Below are positions 37,773 to 48,515 of a DNA stretch of 64,000 nt, one piece after another; positions within the stretch are counted from its first letter, which is position 1; every line of letters begins with the position of its first letter. The stretch comes from Selaginella moellendorffii. Taxonomy: Eukaryota; Plantae; Lycopodiophyta. The position numbers were made by a program, and so were the translations under genes. The notes under the pieces were generated by a model, which saw only the letters and a list, made by a program, of their open reading frames with translations, was not told where the DNA came from and did no database searches. The stretch covers positions 942,067 to 1,006,066 of the forward strand of contig NW_003314322.1 of NCBI RefSeq assembly GCF_000143415.4, given 5' to 3'.

Positions 37773-38514
37773 TCAAGCTGGAGCTGCCGCTGTTACATCG
37801 GATGGAGCCGGAGCCGGAGCCGGAGCCGGAGGTGGAGCTCGAGATCGAACTGGCGGAGGTGGTCGGACTGCTGGAGGAGCCGGAGACGCGGGATCATACC
37901 AGCCGAGAGCGATCTCCAGCGCCTTTTTGGCGCGAGCGAGGCGGGACTTTCGCCTCCGGCCGGTGTTCCTGTGGAGCGTGCGAACCTTGACAGCCTTGTC
38001 GATCACCGAGTAGGCCTCGCCGATCATCACCTCGACGGGCTTGAGCTCCTCGGGCGCCGCCCCCTCGGCCTTCTTCTTGAGATCCTCGAGCGCCGAGAAC
38101 ACCTTCTTCATCCTCGTCCGGATCTCCGACTTCCTGGCCTTGTTGTAGATGCGCCTCTTCTCGGACAAGAGCGCCCTCTTCACCGCCGACGGCATCTTCT
38201 TCTTCTTGGGCGCCTCCTCGTCCTTGGCCGCCGCTCGAACCCGGAATCTAGACGCTGGGCTTGCTGGAGTCGTGGTTCCTCTCCTGGGCTCCAGAATCGC
38301 GAGCGAGGACACGAGCCTGGCGGTCATATTGCCTGCATTGCCACAACGGAAAATCGATGCCACACTGCTCTAGCTCAAATCTTCGCGTACCCAAATCGTC
38401 GCCGAAGAAGAGCGAGCAGCTCCTGCCGCCACTGGTGCTACAAATCCCAGAAGCCCGAGGCGCCGTGGCCCAGGGCTGGCGGCACGCCCACGCCGTTGTC
38501 ATCGTCGTCGCCAT
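37773..38514 (-). CDS. PRPS20: Plastid 30S ribosomal protein S20 with transit peptide (2 exons)
   Basis: SAVKRA..SEKRRIYNKARKSEIRTRMKKV...AYSVIDKAVK..TLHRNTG.RRKSRLAR. Exon 1 (MATTMTTAW...) is spliced through an intron at about 38333-38390. Pro/Ala-rich tail. Confidence 0.92.
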
Positions 38515-38751: not shown

Positions 38752-39639
38752 TCACTGGTTGAGCGGGATAACAACAATGGAGATATTGTCTCTACTCAAC
38801 TCGCTCGCCTTTCTAACAGCTTGATTCGCCACTGCCTGGCCCAATTCGGATGTTGTTGGATCAACCATCGCGGCTATGTCGCAAACCTCTTGCTCGCTCA
38901 TCCCTTCGTAGAGCCCATCCGAGGCCAACACGATAAACCCATCTTTGTTGGTGTTCGTCCACACCGACACGTCCGGGGTGGCAATCACGCCGTGGTTCTT
39001 GAGCGGAAGGTCCCCGATGGCGCGCGACATTGGAAAGTGGCCATCGATCACGCCGAAGCGTACCACGCCGCCCGCGGCCTCTATCCGGTGCTGCTCCGCG
39101 GGTAACTCCGGGTGGTGGTCGCTCGTTAGCACCTTGGCAACCAGCTTCTCGCCACCGTCGCGGACGCACGCGATCGCCCTCGAGTCGCCAACGTTGGCCA
39201 CGACCATGAACTCGTCCGTCACTACTGCTACGCACGCGGTGGATCCCGCTGGCCACCGGTTCTTGTAGGCTTCCTTGAGAAACGAGCTCTCCAGCTCCGC
39301 GATGGTCTTCTCCAGAGCCGCCTTGACAACTCCAGCGATTTTACTGCTAGAGGCATCCAGTGATCCCTGAAGGTTTGCGCGGAGCTTGGGCTCGAAGTTC
39401 TGGACGAGGAACTCGCTGGCCTGGGAGCCTATGTGGCCGTCGAAGACGGCGAAAACTCCCAGCCGGGTATCACCATGATCGGCGAGCAAGTTGGAGAGCG
39501 CTATTAGCCGATCTTCCTGGTATCTCCGGCGCCCTTGAATGCTCAGATGCCCACTGGACCACCCTGTTGATACTTCCACTGCTACAACACTACTCACCGC
39601 CAGCGCCAAGAGCGCCAAGAGCGCCAAGAGCTTCTTCAT
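38752..39639 (-). CDS. Intronless PP2C phosphatase with N-terminal signal peptide (copy 1, catalytic motifs intact)
   Basis: MKKLLALLALLALAVSSVVA; QGRRRYQEDR; VFDGH; GSTA; NVGDSRA; DHHP; SRAIGD; ASDGL; DNIS. Confidence 0.92.
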   Translation of the reverse strand: MKKLLALLALLALAVSSVVAVEVSTGWSSGHLSIQGRRRYQEDRLIALSNLLADHGDTRLGVFAVFDGHIGSQASEFLVQNFEPKLRANLQGSLDASSSKIAGVVKAALEKTIAELESSFLKEAYKNRWPAGSTACVAVVTDEFMVVANVGDSRAIACVRDGGEKLVAKVLTSDHHPELPAEQHRIEAAGGVVRFGVIDGHFPMSRAIGDLPLKNHGVIATPDVSVWTNTNKDGFIVLASDGLYEGMSEQEVCDIAAMVDPTTSELGQAVANQAVRKASELSRDNISIVVIPLNQ

Positions 39640-39825
39640 CCTTCCTTACCCTAGAAAAAGGAAGCTCTATATAATCCTTATAAACACCCGGTCACATGTG
39701 ACAAAAGACAACATAGATAAGGCGTGTCTTACCGGCCAGAAACTTGGGGGGCTTCTTGAGCGTCAAGGCGCCGCGCTGCTTCTCTAGTTCGGGTGAGAGA
39801 GATCGCAGGACTGGCACGCGGATCA

Positions 39826-41102
39826 ATGGCTACTTGTAACTGTGGGCTTGTGTGTTTGTTTCTTCTCTTCTCAATTCCCGTTAGCGCTAGCGTCTCTTTG
39901 AGCCTAGTCTCAAGATTTAACGCTTCTGCCAATGCCGGTGAAGCAAGTCAAGCGAGAGCAATTTTCCTCCTCTCCTCACTAGTTGATTCTTCTTTCTCTT
40001 CCTTGATCTCCGCTCAGAAGCTCAACTACGTAGCAAGTGAGTACCTTGTTGAGGTAGCGTTCGGATCCAGCAAGTCAAGCAAGAAGCTGATTTTCGACAC
40101 AGGAAGCACGTATATATGGACAAAGTGCTCCAGAAGCAACTTAGGATATCCACACGGCTCAAACACATTCAAGCCACTCAGTTGCGGCACCGACTGCCCA
40201 CTGCAATTTTGTAACATGGACAATGGTGGCTGTTTGTTCCAAGTTACATACCTCTCCAGTTACGTCATAGGTAAACTCGCTAGCTTTTATTAACACACAG
40301 TGCACAGTGCATTGAAATAGCATATGCAGGAGAAGGTGTACAAGACACCATGGAACTCGGGGATCTAACTCGAAGAATACGCTTTGGTTGTGGATATGCG
40401 TGGGGAATCAGTCACGAGTACGATGGAGTGTGTGGATTTGCAATGTCAAGACCATCGGTACCATCACAGCTTCAACCTTTAGCTAAGCAGCTTGGTATCA
40501 CTCGGTTTGCTACATGCTTCTACAAATCCGTGAGGGGCTCTCTCTTTCTCAACCACGATGCTGATAATGCCATGGTGAAACTGTCGAGCTACTCAGTGCC
40601 ACTGCTCAGGCTGCCGGGATCCTTCCCTGGGCCTCTTCCTTACTCGGTTGAAATCACAGGAATCGGTGTTGGTGGCCGGCTCACCTTCCAAACATCCCTA
40701 GGGAGTTTCATCATCTTCGACACAGGAGCTCGCTACACTGTTTTGGTTGAGGCTTTATTTGAGAAGGTAAAGGATTCTTTAGATGCAGCTCTTTCTACAA
40801 GTTATGATCGTGTCGAACAGCCCCATGACCAGATCTGCTATGTTTCTAAAGGTCAATCCTTCCCATTTCCTTCCCTTGATTTTCACTTGAAAACAGTCAC
40901 CATCTCACTCGCTCCAATTAACTATATGATGAGTGGCACCAACGGGGACCGAACTCACTGCCTTGCAATACGAAAGATCAGCGGCCTCTACGGAAATGCA
41001 GTTGGTATTTTTGGAAGTTACATGCAGCACAACATTCTCTTATACCACGACCTTGAGAAACAAGAGCTCTCGTTCGCGGCAGTGGATTGCTCTAAATTTT
41101 AG
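39826..41102 (+). CDS. Secreted A1-family aspartic protease (nepenthesin/xylanase-inhibitor fold)
   Basis: Signal peptide, two catalytic motifs (IFDTGS, IFDTGA), IFGSYMQHN...YHDLE....F...C. An intron at 40271-40329 joins the two ORFs in frame; a further in-frame intron may lie near 39940-40017. Confidence 0.9.
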
Positions 41103-41164
41103 TTAAGCTTCATTTATAAAGTCAATGTAATCGCTTGAAAACTATTGTCTTCAAGCTCCAATAA

Positions 41165-41405
41165 AGAGTGCTTCCCAGCTTCCTTTTCTACGGGCACAGA
41201 AAAAAGAAAACGTCAAACAAAGAAGAACACAGAGCCGACAGCATACTTTGACGGAGTCGATGTAGGTCCTGAGCTCCACTGCGTTCCCTTCCGACTCAGT
41301 AGGTGCAAGGAAAGGCTCGGTGGCGATCAGAGTAAGCTCGACTGCAAGCAAGACAGCAGCCTACTGCAGTCACGAGGGCTTGCCACAAGATTGGTGCTGG
41401 AAAAG
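41165..41405 (-). pseudogene. RAD9 exon fragment (third partial copy)
   Basis: TLIATEPFLAPTESEGNAVELRTYIDSVK is near-identical to RAD9 at about 31490-31580. Confidence 0.85.
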
Positions 41406-41489
41406 AAACAATGGAACTTTTTGCCATACCGCTCCCCGGAACACTCCGCAAGAATAACGCAGCAGCAAGGAGGCTGCTCAGGACAATAG

Positions 41490-43046
41490 AAGCATTGATT
41501 TGCTTGTCGGCATCATGTTCTCGAACTTGAGTGCACCTGGTGACTTGAAATGCCTGTTTAGACGAAACCAAAACTCGATACACGTTATTGAATTGTAACT
41601 GCGGAAAGCGGGTTGACAAGAACATACCAACAACCTCGCTTCATCCCCGGAGATGTTGCTTGAGCGCAAAACCCATCCACATTGCTTTCCTCGTTTGTAT
41701 CGGCAGCAATCCAGTTGCTCAAATATTTTCCAAACAGCTGTTGTGCACTACGCTCATCTGCATTGACAAATTAGCAGCTTAGCCTGAAACAACGAACACT
41801 GAAAAGCCTTCACCATTGGGCTGCACGACGTCGTCCTCTGTACCATTCCGGGATCCTTAGAGAAAAATGAAATACGTGAGGAACAAAAGCGGTTGATTCA
41901 TCGTAAAAACAAACTCATGTTGGTGGAACGGAAGCTCCTCGGTATATTTTACGAGGCTGTTGTTAGCAGAATCACTGGCTTGCGTCAAAATCGGCATTTG
42001 CGGCATCATCAACACTGAACTTTGGAGCAAGAAGAATTGGGCTGCAGGCAGGACGTGGATTTTGCAACTATAAAACATTAAGACAATGAAAGTAGTACCT
42101 TCCAGCTTTGTCGAAGAAAAGCTGCATATCAGCCTCCGAAACCTTGGCAAAAATTTATGCATGTAAAGGCCATCTAGATGTTAGGATTTCCTCTTGAGAT
42201 AAGTGAAGCACCTTGAGCTCCTTGACGCCGAACGTAACGTCAACTACGACTACAGTATGGAGATAGTATCGCAATTCTTCGGCGGGAGCAATCTGAGTGC
42301 GATAAAAAGGAAACGTCAAAGAAAGAAAAAGGATCTAGAGCCGAGCGAGCAGCAACATACCTTTGACGCGGTCGATGTAGCTCCTGATCTCCACTGCCTT
42401 GCCTTCGGACTCAGTAGGCGCAAGGAAAAGCTCGGTAGGGATCAGTAAGCTCGACTCCAAATTAGCTGAAGTCACGAGGCCTTGCCACCAGGGTGCTGGG
42501 AAAAGAGTATCGACACATGCTGCATTTCTGTGTCATTGTTGCAAGACGTTTCCTTAAAAGCTAGCGACAGAAGCTACGAGTCAAATCCAAGACGAACAAA
42601 TCCGCAATTACATACCATTCAAGCAGTCGATCGGAGGCATTGCTGTCCGACAGTGTGCTTGGTTGCGTCCGCAAGACAGTGCACACGGCCTTAAAAGACG
42701 ACATTAGCATCCGAGAAAGGAAAAAAACGGACAAGGCTCATACTTCCAGACGTACGCTGCACTGAGCGCTCGAGGAAGAGAGCTGCCTATCAAGGATGGA
42801 ATGTGATCGCAACGAACGCCGAGCGCGCCGAGGGGCACCTAGCAAAGAAAAAGAAATAGAGATTTTCTCTCACCTTGTCCAGCAGCGCCTCTAGAAGCCG
42901 ACGCGGGCCAGGCACGCGATGCAAGCCCCTGAAGGCATTGCGGCCAAGTGTACACTCCATTCTAGAGCAAAAAGGTGGTCTTGTATTCTTCTAATCGCAC
43001 TTTCGAGCATGCAAGAGTCCCACGCGGGCATCTTGCGCTTCCTAAG
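41490..43046 (-). pseudogene. Inverted, intron-retaining RAD9 pseudogene
   Basis: Reverse-complement similarity to 30740-32850 from the 5' flank through the 3' UTR (ATG at 42960, stop equivalent near 41641), with many small deletions and frameshifts. Confidence 0.9.
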
Positions 43047-43071
43047 TCTAGCCGATGTGATCATTGGAACC

Positions 43072-44631
43072 TCAACCTCCAGTAAAGTAAGCATGGTTGA
43101 GAGCTTGCATCGCTGTGATCCTATCCTCCTGAAACAGATTCAAACATCAGTAAGCGTGAAAAGTTTTAGTTTTCTTCCTACCGGGGACCATCGGAGGAGG
43201 CTCTGCACAAGCTCGAGCGCAAGCTTATTGGGGAAGCCGTGTGACAGAGCCGACTGATTCACGCATCGCGCAGTTTGCAGCGCCTAAGGAAGAAGAGAAA
43301 CAAGTAAACAAAAACGAAAACATCCAGTCAAGCCTCAAAGGTTTACCATTGTCTCCAGGAGCTCTCCAGCCAAGATCTTGTCCGGAGGGAAGACACAAAA
43401 GTTCGACAGCCCCAGCAAATAGGCCACGGAACGCGGTGGCATCCCGTAGTCAATTTGCCATGCCATTTGCATTTGCAGTGTCGTGGGAAGTATCGCTGAC
43501 CGGTTTCCCATGAAAACCTCTAGAAGCGTAACCCCGACCATCCACATGTCAAACCTGCAATTGGCATTTCAGTTTGATACCAAAATAAGAAAAAAACACT
43601 TACGCTTCCCCTTCATGGAGGTAAAACCTGTAGTCGTCGATGAATCGAGCCTCCGGTGCTGTGTAGCGCATGTCACTTTCACCATTCCTGTATAAAGAAT
43701 TTTCATCAATGAATTCTTGAGAACTACCTATACCTGAGAGGACCAATGCCTCTGTACAACGTTTTGCTGCTGGTCTGGTCGATTGCACTCCCAAGGTCGA
43801 TAATTCGAGTGTGTCCTCCTGCCACTAGTATGTTGTCTGGCTTGATGTCTCGATGGTAAATTCCACGCTCGTGGAGGGATGCAACACCTAGCAACTGCAA
43901 CAGCACAAGAAAACAAACACAAAGTGAGTCACACAACAAAAAAAAATAGAAGTAGAAAAGATTTAAAGCTAACCAGTTGAGTAACAAAGCTCCTCTTCTT
44001 GATGCTCCTCGTTTTCAACAACGATGTAGCAGTTTTTCCCTCATGGAAGAAGACCATGTAGATTTCATTGCCTTCTTGGAAAGCCTCCACGAACCTGTGA
44101 ACGTTTGCTAGAAATTTTCAAAGCAAAAGAAAAGACAAACCTCCCAACGTGGTCGAGAGAAGTATTGTAGCACGGGGGATCATACAATCCACAAGTCTCC
44201 GTCATCACCCAAGACTTCCGAAGTGATTGACCACATTGCAATTGTTCGCTCCTCAATCTAGAACCAAAATAAATCTCCCGATAAGCTGAAGCCAGTCGCA
44301 CCTCGTCCAACATCTAGAAGAAAAAAAAAAAAAACAAAGAAAGAATAAGTTGAAATTTTGACTTGCACCAATCCCTACTTACCATCACAACTTTGGCAAC
44401 ATAAGCCTGGGAGTCATTAGGATACCTTGCATTGTACACACGACCAAAGGCTCCTCTCCCAATCTCTCCCCCTACAATTTCCACGTCGAGGAAGAAGCTA
44501 CCCCACTCAGCCGCAAGGTTGACTTCATCGTCCATCTCTAGGCATCGATCCTCACCATGGCACACCACCTTCTTGGGCTCTGAAGCCGCGGGAAAGATCG
44601 CTAGGATCAGGAAAGCCAAGAGCAACAGCAT
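43072..44631 (-). CDS. Signal-peptide Ser/Thr protein kinase, 8 exons, catalytic motifs intact
   Basis: MLLLLAFLILAIFPAASE; GRGAFG; VAK; REIYFG; HRDIKPDN; IIDLGSA; YTAPE; FDMWMVG; GFPN.LAL.LV..LL.W.P; EDRIT..QAL.H.YF. All seven GT-AG introns are phase-compatible when spliced by hand. Confidence 0.88.
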
Positions 44632-44640
44632 GGCTGCAAA

Positions 44641-44987
44641 GTAACAATAAATGAGCCAATGCATCGCAAGTAACAATAAATGAGCCGATGCATCGCAAGT
44701 AACAATAAATGAGCCGATGCATCGCAAGAAAGAAGCTTTAAGATACCTCCCACACGCATTGCTTTGCTGCCGATGTTGATCTCCCGCACCATCGCGCGCC
44801 GCTAGCGCGCCGATCTGTAAGAAGCTCTGGATGTAAGGGAGAGTAGCTAGCAGCAAGAACAAAAAGAAGGAACCTTGCCGCGCTCGCCAATGTCGATCTC
44901 CCGCGCGCCGATCTATAAGAAGCTCTGGATGTAAGAGACAGTAGCTAGCAGCAAGAAAGAAAAGCAGGAACCTGGTGGCGCTCGCCT
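44641..44987. repeat. Tandem repeats upstream of the kinase: three 29-bp units plus two ~100-bp units
   Basis: GTAACAATAAATGAGCCGATGCATCGCAA x3 at 44641-44728; duplicated GATCT.TAAGAAGCTCTGGATGTAAG...GTAGCTAGCAGCAAGAA at about 44780-44987. Confidence 0.85.
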
Positions 44988-45165
44988 CGCGCTTTAGCCC
45001 CAAATAAACCCTTGTTACAAGTGCTAGATTCTCTGTCCTAAATATTTCTTGTCCGATCAAAATCGCTTACATGGTTCGTATGCTTCTTCCCGGGGCCCTT
45101 AAAAAAGTAACCTCGACTTCTATTAATTATAAAATTAACTAAGACATGTGAGTAATTAGACTAAA

Positions 45166-46056
45166 CTAAGTGGGGATAACAACAATGGAGATATTGTCTC
45201 TATAGCTCTCCTTTCTAGCAGCTTGAGCCTTTCTGGCAGCTTGATCGGCCACTGCCTGGCCCAACTCTGGTGTTTCTGGATCGACCGTCGCGGCTATGTC
45301 GCAAACCTCTTGCTCGCTTATCCCATCGTAGAGCCCATGCGAAGCCACCACGATAAACCCATCCATGGCGTTCCTCCACACCGTGACATCCGGGGTGCCA
45401 ATCACGCCGTAGTACCTCTTGAGCAGGAGGTCCCCGATGGAGCGGGACATTGGAAACCAGCCCTCGATCACGCCAGAGCGTACCTCGCTCCCCGCGGCCT
45501 CTAACCGCTGCCTCTCCATGGGCAACTCCGGGTGGTGGTCGCTCGTTAGCGCCTTGGCAACCAGCTTCTTGCCACCGTCGCGGACGCACGCGATCGCCCT
45601 CGAGTCGCCGACGTTGGCCATGACCATGAACTCGTCCGTCACCACCGCAACGCACGCGGTGGATCCCGCGTCCCACCACCGCTTCTCGTAGGCTTCCTTG
45701 AGAAACGACGTCTCCAGCTCCGCGATGGTCTTCTCCAGAGCCGCCTTGACAACACTAGCTTCGATTGAGGCATCCAGTGACCCCTGGAGGTTTGCGCGGA
45801 GCCTGGGCTCGAAGTTCTGGACGAGGAACTCGCTGGCCTGTGAGTCTGTGTGTCCGTCGAAGATGGCGAAAACACCCAGCCGGGTATCACCATCATCGAT
45901 GAGCAAGTTGGAGAGCGCTAGTACCCGATCTTCCTGGTGTCTCCGGCGCCCTTGAATGCTCAGATGCCCACTCGACCACCCTGTTGATACTTCCACTGCT
46001 ACAACACTACTCACCGCCAGCGCCAAGAGCGCCAGGAGCGCCAAGAGCTTCTTCAT
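45166..46056 (-). CDS. Intronless signal-peptide PP2C (copy 2, DG to HG substitution)
   Basis: Close paralog of 38752-39639 with the same signal peptide; ASHGLYD replaces ASDGLYE. The real start is probably the ATG at 46056. Confidence 0.9.
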   Translation of the reverse strand: MKKLLALLALLALAVSSVVAVEVSTGWSSGHLSIQGRRRHQEDRVLALSNLLIDDGDTRLGVFAIFDGHTDSQASEFLVQNFEPRLRANLQGSLDASIEASVVKAALEKTIAELETSFLKEAYEKRWWDAGSTACVAVVTDEFMVMANVGDSRAIACVRDGGKKLVAKALTSDHHPELPMERQRLEAAGSEVRSGVIEGWFPMSRSIGDLLLKRYYGVIGTPDVTVWRNAMDGFIVVASHGLYDGISEQEVCDIAATVDPETPELGQAVADQAARKAQAARKESYRDNISIVVIPT

Positions 46057-46117
46057 CTTTACCCTATGACAAAAGGAAGAGCTTTGGTCTCTTTCTATAG
46101 TCTCAAGGAAAAAGGTT

Positions 46118-48284
46118 TCAGCCATGAGCTTCGAAACATCCACACTTGACCTTGATCGTTTCACTGTTTCTCACCACCTCGCCCTGGATTATCCCTCCCA
46201 CGAACTTCCCAATCACCAGCTGAGACACCATCACTACATTCCCAGGATCCTGGAAAAAGAAAAAACAAAAAGAATGGATTAGTTGATCGCCTATACTAGA
46301 AGAGAACTTGGGCGCTTCTTACTTGTGTCCTGTAACTCCGGATCCCCATGAGACCATAGTTCCTGGATCGCGTCCAGTGGTGGTGCTTGAATTTGTAGTC
46401 GTTTCCCAGAACGCCCAGCCGCCCAGCCGCGCGCATGAAATAGTACGCCGGCTTTGGCAGCGGCCGATTGGCGATGGCGCTCGTCGTGAACTGGTTGAAG
46501 AGCACTTGATCCCCGCGAAAGATTTGAGAGTGGCCTCCGCAGTGGACATCACCTGTGGATCTCTGTGAGAAAACCAAACGAACAAGCAAAGAATTTGAGG
46601 AAGACTTCCTACCTCCCAGGACCATGACCTCTCTCCGCCCGCTCTCCTTCCAATTCACCAGCGCTTCGATCATCCTCGTCTGCTCCTTGCGATGTATGTC
46701 CGCCGACCAGTGCCCCCGGAAATCCACGAGCCGCGGCACATTCTTCCCGGCGGCATCGGTGATGTTCGGCTCCAGGAAGACGAGCGGCGCCGGGGAGCAA
46801 ACCAGCAGCACGCGTACATCCTCGAAGAGATCCCCCGGGCGGAGAGCCTGGTCGATGTCGGTCCACTGCGGGCTGCCGAGGTAGGGGAACTCGTCGCCCT
46901 TGACTCGCTGGAACGATCGGCAGCCGCGAACATCCAAGAACATAAGCCCCAGCCCGCCAACTACGTGGAAGTGGTGGTCCTGCACGGACGGCCAGGATTT
47001 GCCGAGTTCTTCCGCAAATCATGGAACCACGTACCTTGGTCAGCTTGTTGAGCTTCCTGAAATCGATGTCGCGGTCCAATTGGCGCTGGTACTCCAGGTA
47101 GGCGATCCACGCGCCGCGCGCGATGAAGAAATCGAGGCATTCCGGGTCCCAGTCGGCCTCGAGGTCGGCCCAATTGTCGCGGATCTCGTGGTCGTCGTAG
47201 ATCATGAGATTGGGGCAATTCGCCAGGCAGCGGGCGGTGGGGGGGTGCCGCCACGTCTCGCGGTACACCTCGCGGTACGCTTCGCGGACTTCCTCCTCTT
47301 TGGTGTGCCACAGATGCCGTGGGACGTCCTTCATGATCTCTTCCTTGCACAGCCGGAATCGATCGGAGCAGCGGTCGACATGGTTTTCCTTGTCCATCAA
47401 TTTATCGCCATCGCCATACACCTGGGAGAAAAGAGAAAGAGAAATTTCTTAAGAACACGACAAGAACTTAAGAACAGGGGAATGGAGGGATCGTTTAATG
47501 GAACAGCAATCTTAGATCCAACCGTGCAATCCTTGAAGGAAAGAAAGGAAATCGAGGACCCAACACAGGAATTCTGGACAAAAGCCGCCGTGAGAATGGA
47601 TCGATCTCTCACCTGGTCGCCGAGATGGAGGACCAAGTCCACGCTCCCAGCCTCGATGTTCTTGGCGAGGTCCGCCCACAGGTCCGAGTGAATGGGGATT
47701 TCCATCTGGGTGATGAAGATCTTGTTGCAGCTCACCACTCCAACATTGACACGATCCCACAGCTCCTCCTTCCTGGGAAACGTGACGAAGCTACTCCTGG
47801 TCACGAGATCAGATTTGCATCCCTCCAGCTCCACCAGGTAGCGGCACCCGGGGCTGAGCTCCAAGAACTCAAACGCCACTGGCCGATTCGCGGGCAACCT
47901 CTTCTCCACCTTCAAGCTCCTCCCCTGCTTGCTCTTCGATTTTCCCGGCAGCGCTGGATCTTGATCCCCTTCCTTGGGAATCGCGCTCGCCTGATCTTGC
48001 GGAGCGGGAGCATCCTTCTTCGCTCTTCGCCGACGCCTCCTGGATTTCTGGAGCAGCTGCCGCGACCGCAACACGTCGGCGGCATCCTCGATCTGGGTGA
48101 GCGAGACCGTGATCCGGGCCTCGCGATCGATTTCCAGCAGGATCCTGGCGCTCGTTGACGTTACCTTGCCAATCACTGGCCCGATCACCACATTGGCGTC
48201 CTCCTGGGATTTCTTCCTCGCATTTCGCTCCTCGCCCAGCAATTTGTTCACTGCCCCGGCGACCTTCTTCCTCCACGCGCTCAT
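46118..48284 (-). CDS. PhoD-like (alkaline phosphatase D) metallophosphatase, 5 exons
   Basis: IGPVIGKVT...ARILLE; VSCN; LHLGDQ|VYGD; MIYDDHEIRDNW; GG|DVH; RNYG. Last exon DPGNVV...AHG*. No signal peptide seen. Confidence 0.85.
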
Positions 48285-48515
48285 GATCACTCCATCCGTA
48301 CCAAGCAAAACCCAGGCCTATATAAACAACGCGTGACGATTCGCGGATATCCCTTGTCTCCGTACATTTGATCCCATTCTTTTCGAACAAGAGAAAACGT
48401 ACAAAAACTTCGTCGTCGTCTTCGGAAGGAAAGACACTAAGAGAAAAACATAGGAAGGAAAAAAAGAATATTCTTTACTTCTGCCTGTTGATTCCTTGCT
48501 TTCGTGATATTCCGT

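Follow-up and report, generated by a model that had tools for sequence, protein, structure and literature searches.

The closest described counterpart of the locus presented here is found in Arabidopsis, where At3g63320 and At3g63340 form a tandem pair of PP2C phosphatase genes (PMC2612031) and where a full-length chimeric cDNA of A. thaliana starts in At3g63340 (the PP2C), ends in At3g63330 (a kinase) and carries one continuous open reading frame (ORF; PMC2695776). Transcriptome papers treat this PP2C51 family as generic PP2Cs of the abscisic acid (ABA) type, the family being annotated and functionally uncharacterised; the literature found on PP2C50/51 and At3g63330 consists of gene lists, the one report of the chimeric cDNA and one overexpression study without localisation. 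The present analysis concerns a 64-kb stretch of Selaginella moellendorffii DNA (the window) and, within it, the locus at positions 38752-48284, which holds two PP2C genes of that family (PP2C-1 and PP2C-2) with a Ser/Thr kinase gene of the At3g63330 type between them, as well as one gene for an aspartic protease and one for a PhoD-like phosphatase.

Judging from the sequences, PP2C-1 and the kinase, both beginning with a signal-peptide-like leader, probably act as a pair in the lumen of the secretory pathway, with PP2C-2 as a decaying copy—a reading to which we would assign a probability of roughly 0.6. The original prediction, made from the letters of the window, had proposed at this place a clustered writer/eraser pair for lumenal or apoplastic phosphorylation, set in a secretory module of five genes, and had overlooked that the genes belong to the known and annotated PP2C51/At3g63330 family. 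Of this proposal the pair has survived, since it is conserved in A. halleri, in Asimina and in the chimeric mRNA of A. thaliana and since features of the clade point to the lumen, whereas the protease and the PhoD-like gene are not members of it. Pfam confirmed every domain that had been named for the five genes, and the features of the locus are as follows:

38752..39639, minus strand: PP2C-1, a single exon encoding 295 amino acids (aa), Pfam PF00481 with E 2.5e-52
39826..41102, plus strand: aspartic protease of the nepenthesin/TAXi type, two exons (39826-40270 and 40330-41102), 405 aa, Pfam TAXi_N, TAXi_C and Asp
43072..44631, minus strand: Ser/Thr kinase of the At3g63330 type, eight exons, 384 aa, Pfam Pkinase in pieces
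44633..44792, minus strand: uncertain 5' end of the kinase gene (from NCBI model P0123, the DNA and TRF)
45166..46056, minus strand: PP2C-2, 296 aa, a duplicate of PP2C-1, Pfam PF00481 with E 5.9e-43
46118..48284, minus strand: PhoD-like metallophosphatase, five exons, 595 aa, Pfam PhoD and DUF7800

On the minus strand the order is PP2C-2, then the kinase, and then, 3.4 kb further downstream, the intact PP2C-1. The RNA evidence used throughout comes from three transcript assemblies and one raw RNA-seq run (X23), mapped on 42900-48400; all the reads in this interval are first-mate-on-plus, matching minus-strand RNAs.

The PP2C51 family and its linked kinase

Outside Selaginella, the nearest relatives of the two PP2Cs are angiosperm proteins named PP2C 51 or 76, and a profile of these relatives retrieved more than 120 proteins, nearly all of them named 'protein phosphatase 2C 51'. 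A quick maximum-likelihood tree of 47 PP2Cs was prepared with support values from the Shimodaira–Hasegawa-like approximate likelihood ratio test (SH-aLRT), Vaccinium being included and Castanea and Actinidia left out. In this tree the window PP2Cs and three Selaginella paralogues are sister to the angiosperm PP2C51 clade with a support of 93, the angiosperm clade itself being supported by 99. On this phylogeny, the window PP2Cs are co-orthologues of PP2C51, Selaginella having an expansion of its own. Concerning the second PP2C copies, those of the Brassicaceae group together and so do those of Selaginella; as read from the tree, the downstream second PP2C arose independently in the two lineages. 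A Cryptomeria japonica protein also named 'protein phosphatase 2C 51' (P0113, L005) was considered as a clade member and rejected, its name being misleading, as it groups with PP2C 8/clade-A-like proteins. Within the species, two S. moellendorffii proteins match the PP2C-1 ORF, a partial one at 100% identity and another at 96%, the latter probably representing the other haplotype.

The kinase gene was modelled from the DNA, its exons on the minus strand being 44631-44383, 44313-44141, 44094-43974, 43894-43734, 43687-43604, 43554-43347, 43283-43182 and 43128-43072, and its 384 aa being counted from the Met that opens the h-region of the leader. All seven introns are of the GT-AG type and five of them were seen in transcript contigs or reads, so that the RNA check of splicing that had been suggested is partly answered for the kinase and fully for the PhoD-like gene (four introns of four). 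The complete set of catalytic motifs claimed for the kinase is indeed present in the eight-exon spliced model—GxGxxG, the Lys of VAxK, the Glu of helix alpha-C, HRDxKxxN (as HRDIKPDN), APE, DxWxxG (as DMWxxG) and the Arg of subdomain XI—with DLG where DFG is canonical, and by this motif set the predicted enzyme looks catalytically competent. The Pfam Pkinase matches fall on individual exons, the spliced protein having been scored by exon only. It should be noted that the NCBI model of the same gene (P0123, 326 aa), named 'probable inactive protein kinase At3g63330', misreads the frame of exon 2 and skips exon 3 (43974-44313), whereby helix alpha-C and the hinge are lost; the intron between these two exons (44095-44140) is confirmed by RNA. 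In the kinase half of A. halleri (L006, 6880-9465), exons for the Gly-loop and the beta-3 Lys precede the stretch that corresponds to the old At3g63330 model, and the SwissProt-derived name 'probable inactive' therefore probably goes back to a truncated gene model.

The Selaginella kinase is collinear with the kinase exons of A. halleri and scores 108 bits (E 4e-30) against their joined translations, vs 45 bits for the top-scoring single domain in a set of 150 generic kinases. At least five intron positions are shared between the two species, i.e. after KxxM (the beta-3 lysine exon), in xQL|LLG, at GPxR|, before (F/Y)DMW and in WxP|EDR. By these comparisons, the kinase is an orthologue of the At3g63330-type kinase half of the PP2C51 gene. 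The linkage of the two halves is likewise found elsewhere: in A. halleri (L006), the gene upstream of the one in the PP2C50 position encodes a 1057-aa product with both PP2C and Pkinase; in the magnoliid Asimina (L007), a PP2C51 gene is followed by an adjacent At3g63330-type kinase on the same strand; and the PP2C51 proteins of Nelumbo and Dendrobium extend beyond the PP2C domain into a shared linker motif. Because the same arrangement is present in Selaginella, A. halleri and Asimina, and because of the shared linker, the PP2C-to-kinase unit predates the split between lycophytes and seed plants. The synteny check in other plants, also suggested beforehand, thus came out positive for the PP2C-to-kinase linkage and negative for the protease and the PhoD-like gene. 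No kinase of the same family lies beside the PP2C of the Selaginella paralogue P0003.

The searches that started from the kinase itself gave the following results. With the 57-aa catalytic-loop exon, a search of 1.84 billion representatives returned mostly giant multi-kinase proteins and no orthologue among the 150 matches listed, its one useful yield being P0123, the NCBI model of the locus itself. A word-indexed search with P0123, in which exon 2 is mis-framed and exon 3 absent, found P0123 itself and two weak matches only, and a look-up of P0123 in the ESM Atlas led to generic kinase clusters only. Neither the Pfam scans nor the homology searches, which did not extend to a direct comparison with those families, yielded a match to Fam20 or PKDCC.

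Hydrophobic leaders and the predicted compartment

Four of the products—PP2C-1, PP2C-2, the kinase and the protease—open with a strongly hydrophobic, signal-peptide-like segment, and no later hydrophobic segment (19-residue Kyte-Doolittle mean of at least 1.6) was found in any of them. The heuristic agrees in this respect with the original prediction, which had described hydrophobic signal-peptide-like starts and no later transmembrane segment for the kinase and both PP2Cs. The leaders of the two PP2Cs are identical in layout, consisting of MKK, a Leu/Ala-rich h-region and VVA|VE, and both N-termini reach a 19-residue Kyte-Doolittle maximum of 2.51; in the kinase, a Leu-rich h-region is followed by PAAS|EP. 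Targeting to mitochondria or plastids was also considered, PPM1K being the best match in the PDB, and was rejected, the leaders being Leu/Ala-rich and strongly hydrophobic, neither amphipathic nor Ser/Arg-rich.

A hydrophobic beginning is characteristic of the clade, since it was seen in 100 of the 121 Met-started PP2C51-clade members vs 15 of 99 other PP2Cs, and most of the 21 clade members lacking it are visibly N-terminally truncated models. The longest uncharged run at the N-terminus has a median of 15 residues in the clade, which, as far as sequence can tell, is the length of a signal peptide rather than that of an anchor. Further hallmarks concern other parts of the proteins: at least four Cys residues occur within the 70 residues up to EDRxxC in 105 of 120 members, forming a module with the pattern C..Y..GGAPAV..SP.C...C...EDRxxC, and an N-x-T sequon stands just before the third of these cysteines in 67 of 120. 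The tetrapeptide KDEL is the canonical signal for retention in the endoplasmic reticulum (ER) and is of use only on the lumenal side of the secretory pathway; it forms the C-terminus of 10 clade members, mostly from Asteraceae, six of which also have an intact signal-peptide-like start. The PP2C-only clade proteins ending with (V)HKDEL are P0273, P0330, P0336, P0337, P0349, P0356, P0361, P0365, P0373, P0382, P0017 and P0031.

In the angiosperm gene, one N-terminal hydrophobic segment stands ahead of the succession PP2C–linker–kinase, and no hydrophobic segment was found in the linker or in the kinase, so that the PP2C and kinase parts of the fused protein should face the same side of the membrane. 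The split in Selaginella adds an evolutionary argument for the location, each half having a leader of its own, as would be expected if both must reach the same compartment. Together with the KDEL, the sequon and the Cys module of the angiosperm proteins, the split leaders lead to a concrete hypothesis of a lumenal kinase–phosphatase pair: the PP2C and the kinase would enter the ER co-translationally, their signal peptides would be cleaved off, and the two enzymes would work either inside the ER or Golgi lumen or once secreted, with each other or common lumenal or secreted proteins as their substrates.

A wider proposal is that of an ancient kinase–phosphatase system in the secretory pathway of vascular plants, present from lycophytes to angiosperms and representing an independent counterpart of Fam20C/VLK with its own eraser; this is put forward tentatively, its chances lying in our estimate a little below even. 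If true, such a system would reversibly phosphorylate lumenal, vacuolar or apoplastic proteins. Phosphorylated proteins occur in the plant apoplast and in secretory compartments, and the literature search revealed no plant kinase or phosphatase assigned to the lumen, nor any plant PP2C or kinase described as secretory. As for novelty, the gene family and the PP2C–kinase chimera are already in databases and in one paper of 2009, so that this is not a new kind of gene. What appears to be new is the separation into two halves that each have a leader, and also the convergent evidence from sequence that would make the whole PP2C51 family lumenal.

The duplicated phosphatase, the neighbouring genes and alternative readings

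Two PP2C phosphatases had been counted at the locus. Both match PF00481 well above its cut-off of 20.3 bits (178.5 bits for PP2C-1 and 147.8 bits for PP2C-2), and the motifs of PP2C-1 are intact, the protein aligning across the entire catalytic domain with PPM1K and PPM1A and keeping the ED, DGH, SDG and DN motifs along with the metal ligands. PP2C-2, by contrast, is a degenerate duplicate, which had been missed: the metal-binding Asp of SDG is replaced by His (SHG) and the Gly of DGHxG by Asp (DGHTD). The duplicated block of about 900 bp (38765-39664 corresponding to 45173-46079) covers the ORF plus about 25 bp only, and the two copies share 87% identity in nucleotides and 83% in amino acids with a dN/dS of 0.66. 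At columns conserved in ten relatives, PP2C-2 is the sole deviating sequence 11 times vs four times for PP2C-1, and the terminal branches in the PP2C tree are 0.23 and 0.027, respectively. It is proposed from these comparisons that PP2C-1 is the working phosphatase of the locus and that PP2C-2, a fast-evolving recent duplicate, is a decaying copy or a pseudo-enzyme.

The ATG of PP2C-2 (46056) is located on the same strand about 60 nucleotides (nt) past the stop of the PhoD-like gene, which ends at 46118. Transcript contigs run from the last exon of the latter straight into PP2C-2, perfectly matching PP2C-2 contigs exist, and the read depth decays from 35 to 0.65 along the PP2C-2 ORF. In view of the short spacing and of this decay, PP2C-2 may be transcribed mainly as the 3' tail of the PhoD-like gene, without a promoter of its own. 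One X1 transcript contig (depth 26 vs 50-77 for its neighbours) is without 31 nt at 45485-45515 in PP2C-2, between short GAGG repeats; this frameshifting skip, seen with low confidence, may be an allelic deletion or an artefact of assembly.

Upstream of the kinase leader exon there are two tandem repeats. The first, at 44639-44728, consists of 3.1 copies of a 29-bp unit, each unit bearing an ATG in a different frame, out of frame with the kinase, and these ATGs possibly start upstream ORFs; the second, at 44805-44986, consists of 1.9 copies of a 98-bp unit.

The protease contains both D[TS]G motifs (DTGS and DTGA), and among strong GTAAAC..CAG combinations only that of its splice model leaves an open frame. 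The PhoD-like gene has its exons on the minus strand at 48284-47610, 47418-47034, 46978-46611, 46550-46322 and 46248-46118, with all four introns confirmed by RNA, each through 43-61 independent read starts. Its PhoD match reaches 32.6 bits vs the cut-off of 27 (in one exon-level ORF), the DUF7800 match being weak. The N-terminus of the protein in the RNA-supported model is hydrophilic, i.e. there is no signal peptide. Approximately 25 single-base differences across 46214-48220 occur at about 40-60% of the reads in the raw RNA run, which fits two expressed haplotypes.

Two observations concern the remaining parts of the locus and its border. A minus-strand ORF at 37773-38363, just downstream of PP2C-1, resembles by eye the precursor of the plastid ribosomal protein S20. 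Between the protease and the 3' end of the kinase gene, segments 27 to 85 bp long occur in two copies roughly 1.1 kb apart (41200-41400 vs 42300-42500) with approximately 82-89% identity; both copies encode a similar short minus-strand peptide, ..APTESEG.AVE.R.YID.VK, ending at a GT donor, and may represent a small tandemly duplicated gene.

Several points weigh against the placement of the PP2C–kinase pair in the lumen. The leaders were judged by the Kyte-Doolittle heuristic, and the literature search brought up no work on the localisation or mechanism of PP2C50/51 or At3g63330. The Cys module, the N-x-T sequon and KDEL are absent from PP2C-1 and PP2C-2 (the Cys module also from the paralogue P0003), so that at this very locus the lumenal reading comes down to the hydrophobic leaders and the orthology. 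The kinase is barely expressed, with a depth of 0-1.3 in run X23 and of 1-6 in contigs, and there are three candidates for its start codon, the RNA depth at the 5' end (44633..44792) being about one read. The NCBI 5' exon (44792-44747), if spliced to the acceptor at 44633, would provide a classic charged n-region; the in-frame ATG at 44664 would give a hydrophobic stretch of about 24 residues with a positive C-flank, possibly a membrane anchor; and the third candidate is the ATG at 44631. The PP2C51-like loci of Vaccinium, Castanea and Actinidia have no kinase within 10 kb; Vaccinium falls among PP2C-only members in the tree and the same is assumed for the other two, and as such they say nothing against the linkage. 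In the main rival reading the leaders would be uncleaved anchors, which hold the PP2C and the kinase on the ER or plasma membrane and leave the catalytic domains on the cytosolic face, as parts of an ordinary signalling module. The h-region and c-region of the PP2C together comprise about 18 uncharged residues, the kinase segment counted from ATG 44664 has EPKK on its C-side, the Selaginella proteins are devoid of the three hallmarks just named (Cys module, sequon and KDEL), and PP2Cs anchored in a membrane and facing the cytosol are known, animal PPM1L and plant KAPP with their hydrophobic N-termini being of this kind. We nevertheless regard such an anchored module as unlikely, since an MKK n-region ahead of an acidic mature N-terminus agrees, by the positive-inside rule, with an N-in/C-out orientation, the -3/-1 contexts VVA|VE and AAS|EP are typical of cleavage sites, the median uncharged run of the clade is short for an anchor, and the KDEL, the N-glycosylation sequon and the four cysteines of the orthologues are sensible only in the lumen.

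Even less probable is a persisting fusion of PP2C-2 with the kinase in Selaginella, hidden by missed splicing, in which the 'signal peptide' of the kinase would be internal. Their strand and order are those of the angiosperm fusion, a good acceptor (TTTGCAG) stands directly before the hydrophobic exon of the kinase at 44633, and the kinase 5' end has no RNA support; PP2C-2, however, has its stop codon directly behind the DNxS..VV.P motif conserved at the C-terminus, no obvious donor precedes this stop, and a 14-residue Leu-rich segment, internal in such a fusion, would be without counterpart in the angiosperm linker. The interval 44740-45107 is uncovered by reads or contigs in four runs, the coverage of PP2C-2 fading to 0.65 before its stop, and there is hence no sign of a fused transcript, at a depth too low to exclude one. 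The grouping of all five genes into one co-regulated module for secretory phosphorylation and phosphate scavenging draws on their location within 9.5 kb, on the signal-peptide-like N-termini of four of the five products and on the overlap of the PhoD and PP2C-2 transcripts. We consider it very improbable: the PhoD-like protein is the product without a signal peptide, and in the RNA data its gene reaches about 30-100 times the depth of the kinase (41-187 vs 0-1.3 in X23); the protease is on the opposite strand and comes from a very large secreted family; neither gene is present around the PP2C51 loci of A. halleri, Asimina, Vaccinium, Castanea and Actinidia; and the two PP2Cs, having arisen by a recent duplication, do not count as independent members. 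Counted independently, the signal-peptide units number two at most (the PP2C/kinase pair, its duplicate included, and the protease), so that the grouping of five genes does not exceed what is expected by chance. The protease and the PhoD-like gene are thus unrelated neighbours outside the pair, and no support emerged for the tie to defence or phosphate scavenging that had been suggested. As regards the pair itself, a chance neighbourhood of unrelated genes might be entertained, both families being large in plants; it is refuted by the conserved linkage, and its probability is next to nil, because in A. halleri and Asimina members of this PP2C clade are followed by that very kinase family and because in Nelumbo and Dendrobium the PP2C ORF runs into the shared linker.

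Comparison with known systems

The Selaginella locus resembles the Arabidopsis cluster At3g63340–At3g63330–PP2C50 (At3g63320) in the PP2C clade, the kinase family, the order and strand of the genes (PP2C, kinase, second PP2C), the positions of the kinase introns and the hydrophobic N-terminus of the PP2C. It differs in that its halves are separate genes, the kinase having its own signal-peptide-like leader, in that the linker of about 250 aa, the four-Cys module and the large kinase inserts are not present, and in that the second PP2C originates from an independent recent duplication, one copy of which is degenerating. With PPM1L and KAPP, the phosphatases share an N-terminal hydrophobic segment before the PP2C domain; in those two proteins it is an uncleaved, cytosol-facing anchor, whereas the PP2C51 clade adds KDEL, the N-glycosylation sequon and the cysteines, which argue for the lumen.

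Concerning the kinase, a soluble kinase domain that stands behind a signal peptide and acts in the lumen of the ER or Golgi, or outside the cell, is the arrangement of animal VLK/PKDCC and Fam20C, the location being a predicted one in the present case. The Selaginella enzyme is, however, a divergent member of the ordinary Pkinase family, the likeness being a functional analogy, and, unlike the plant kinase, the animal secretory kinases are not accompanied by a dedicated PP2C, be it fused or linked. The original prediction had framed the well-characterised secretory kinases as animal ones; secreted canonical kinases and PP2Cs are known also in Toxoplasma, where PPM3C, PP2C-hn and the ROP-type kinases combine the PP2C fold and the canonical kinase fold, respectively, with signal peptides and the secretory pathway (PMC7793252). 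These are parasite effectors delivered to the vacuole or to the host cell, neither forming a gene-linked pair nor being orthologous to the plant proteins. The bacterial pairs PknB-PstP and PrkC-PrpC and the plant fusion At2g40860, finally, belong to other lineages and act in the cytoplasm through soluble domains without a signal peptide; what they have in common with the pair of Selaginella is that a kinase and a PP2C are kept together, the phosphatase presumably reversing the action of the kinase.

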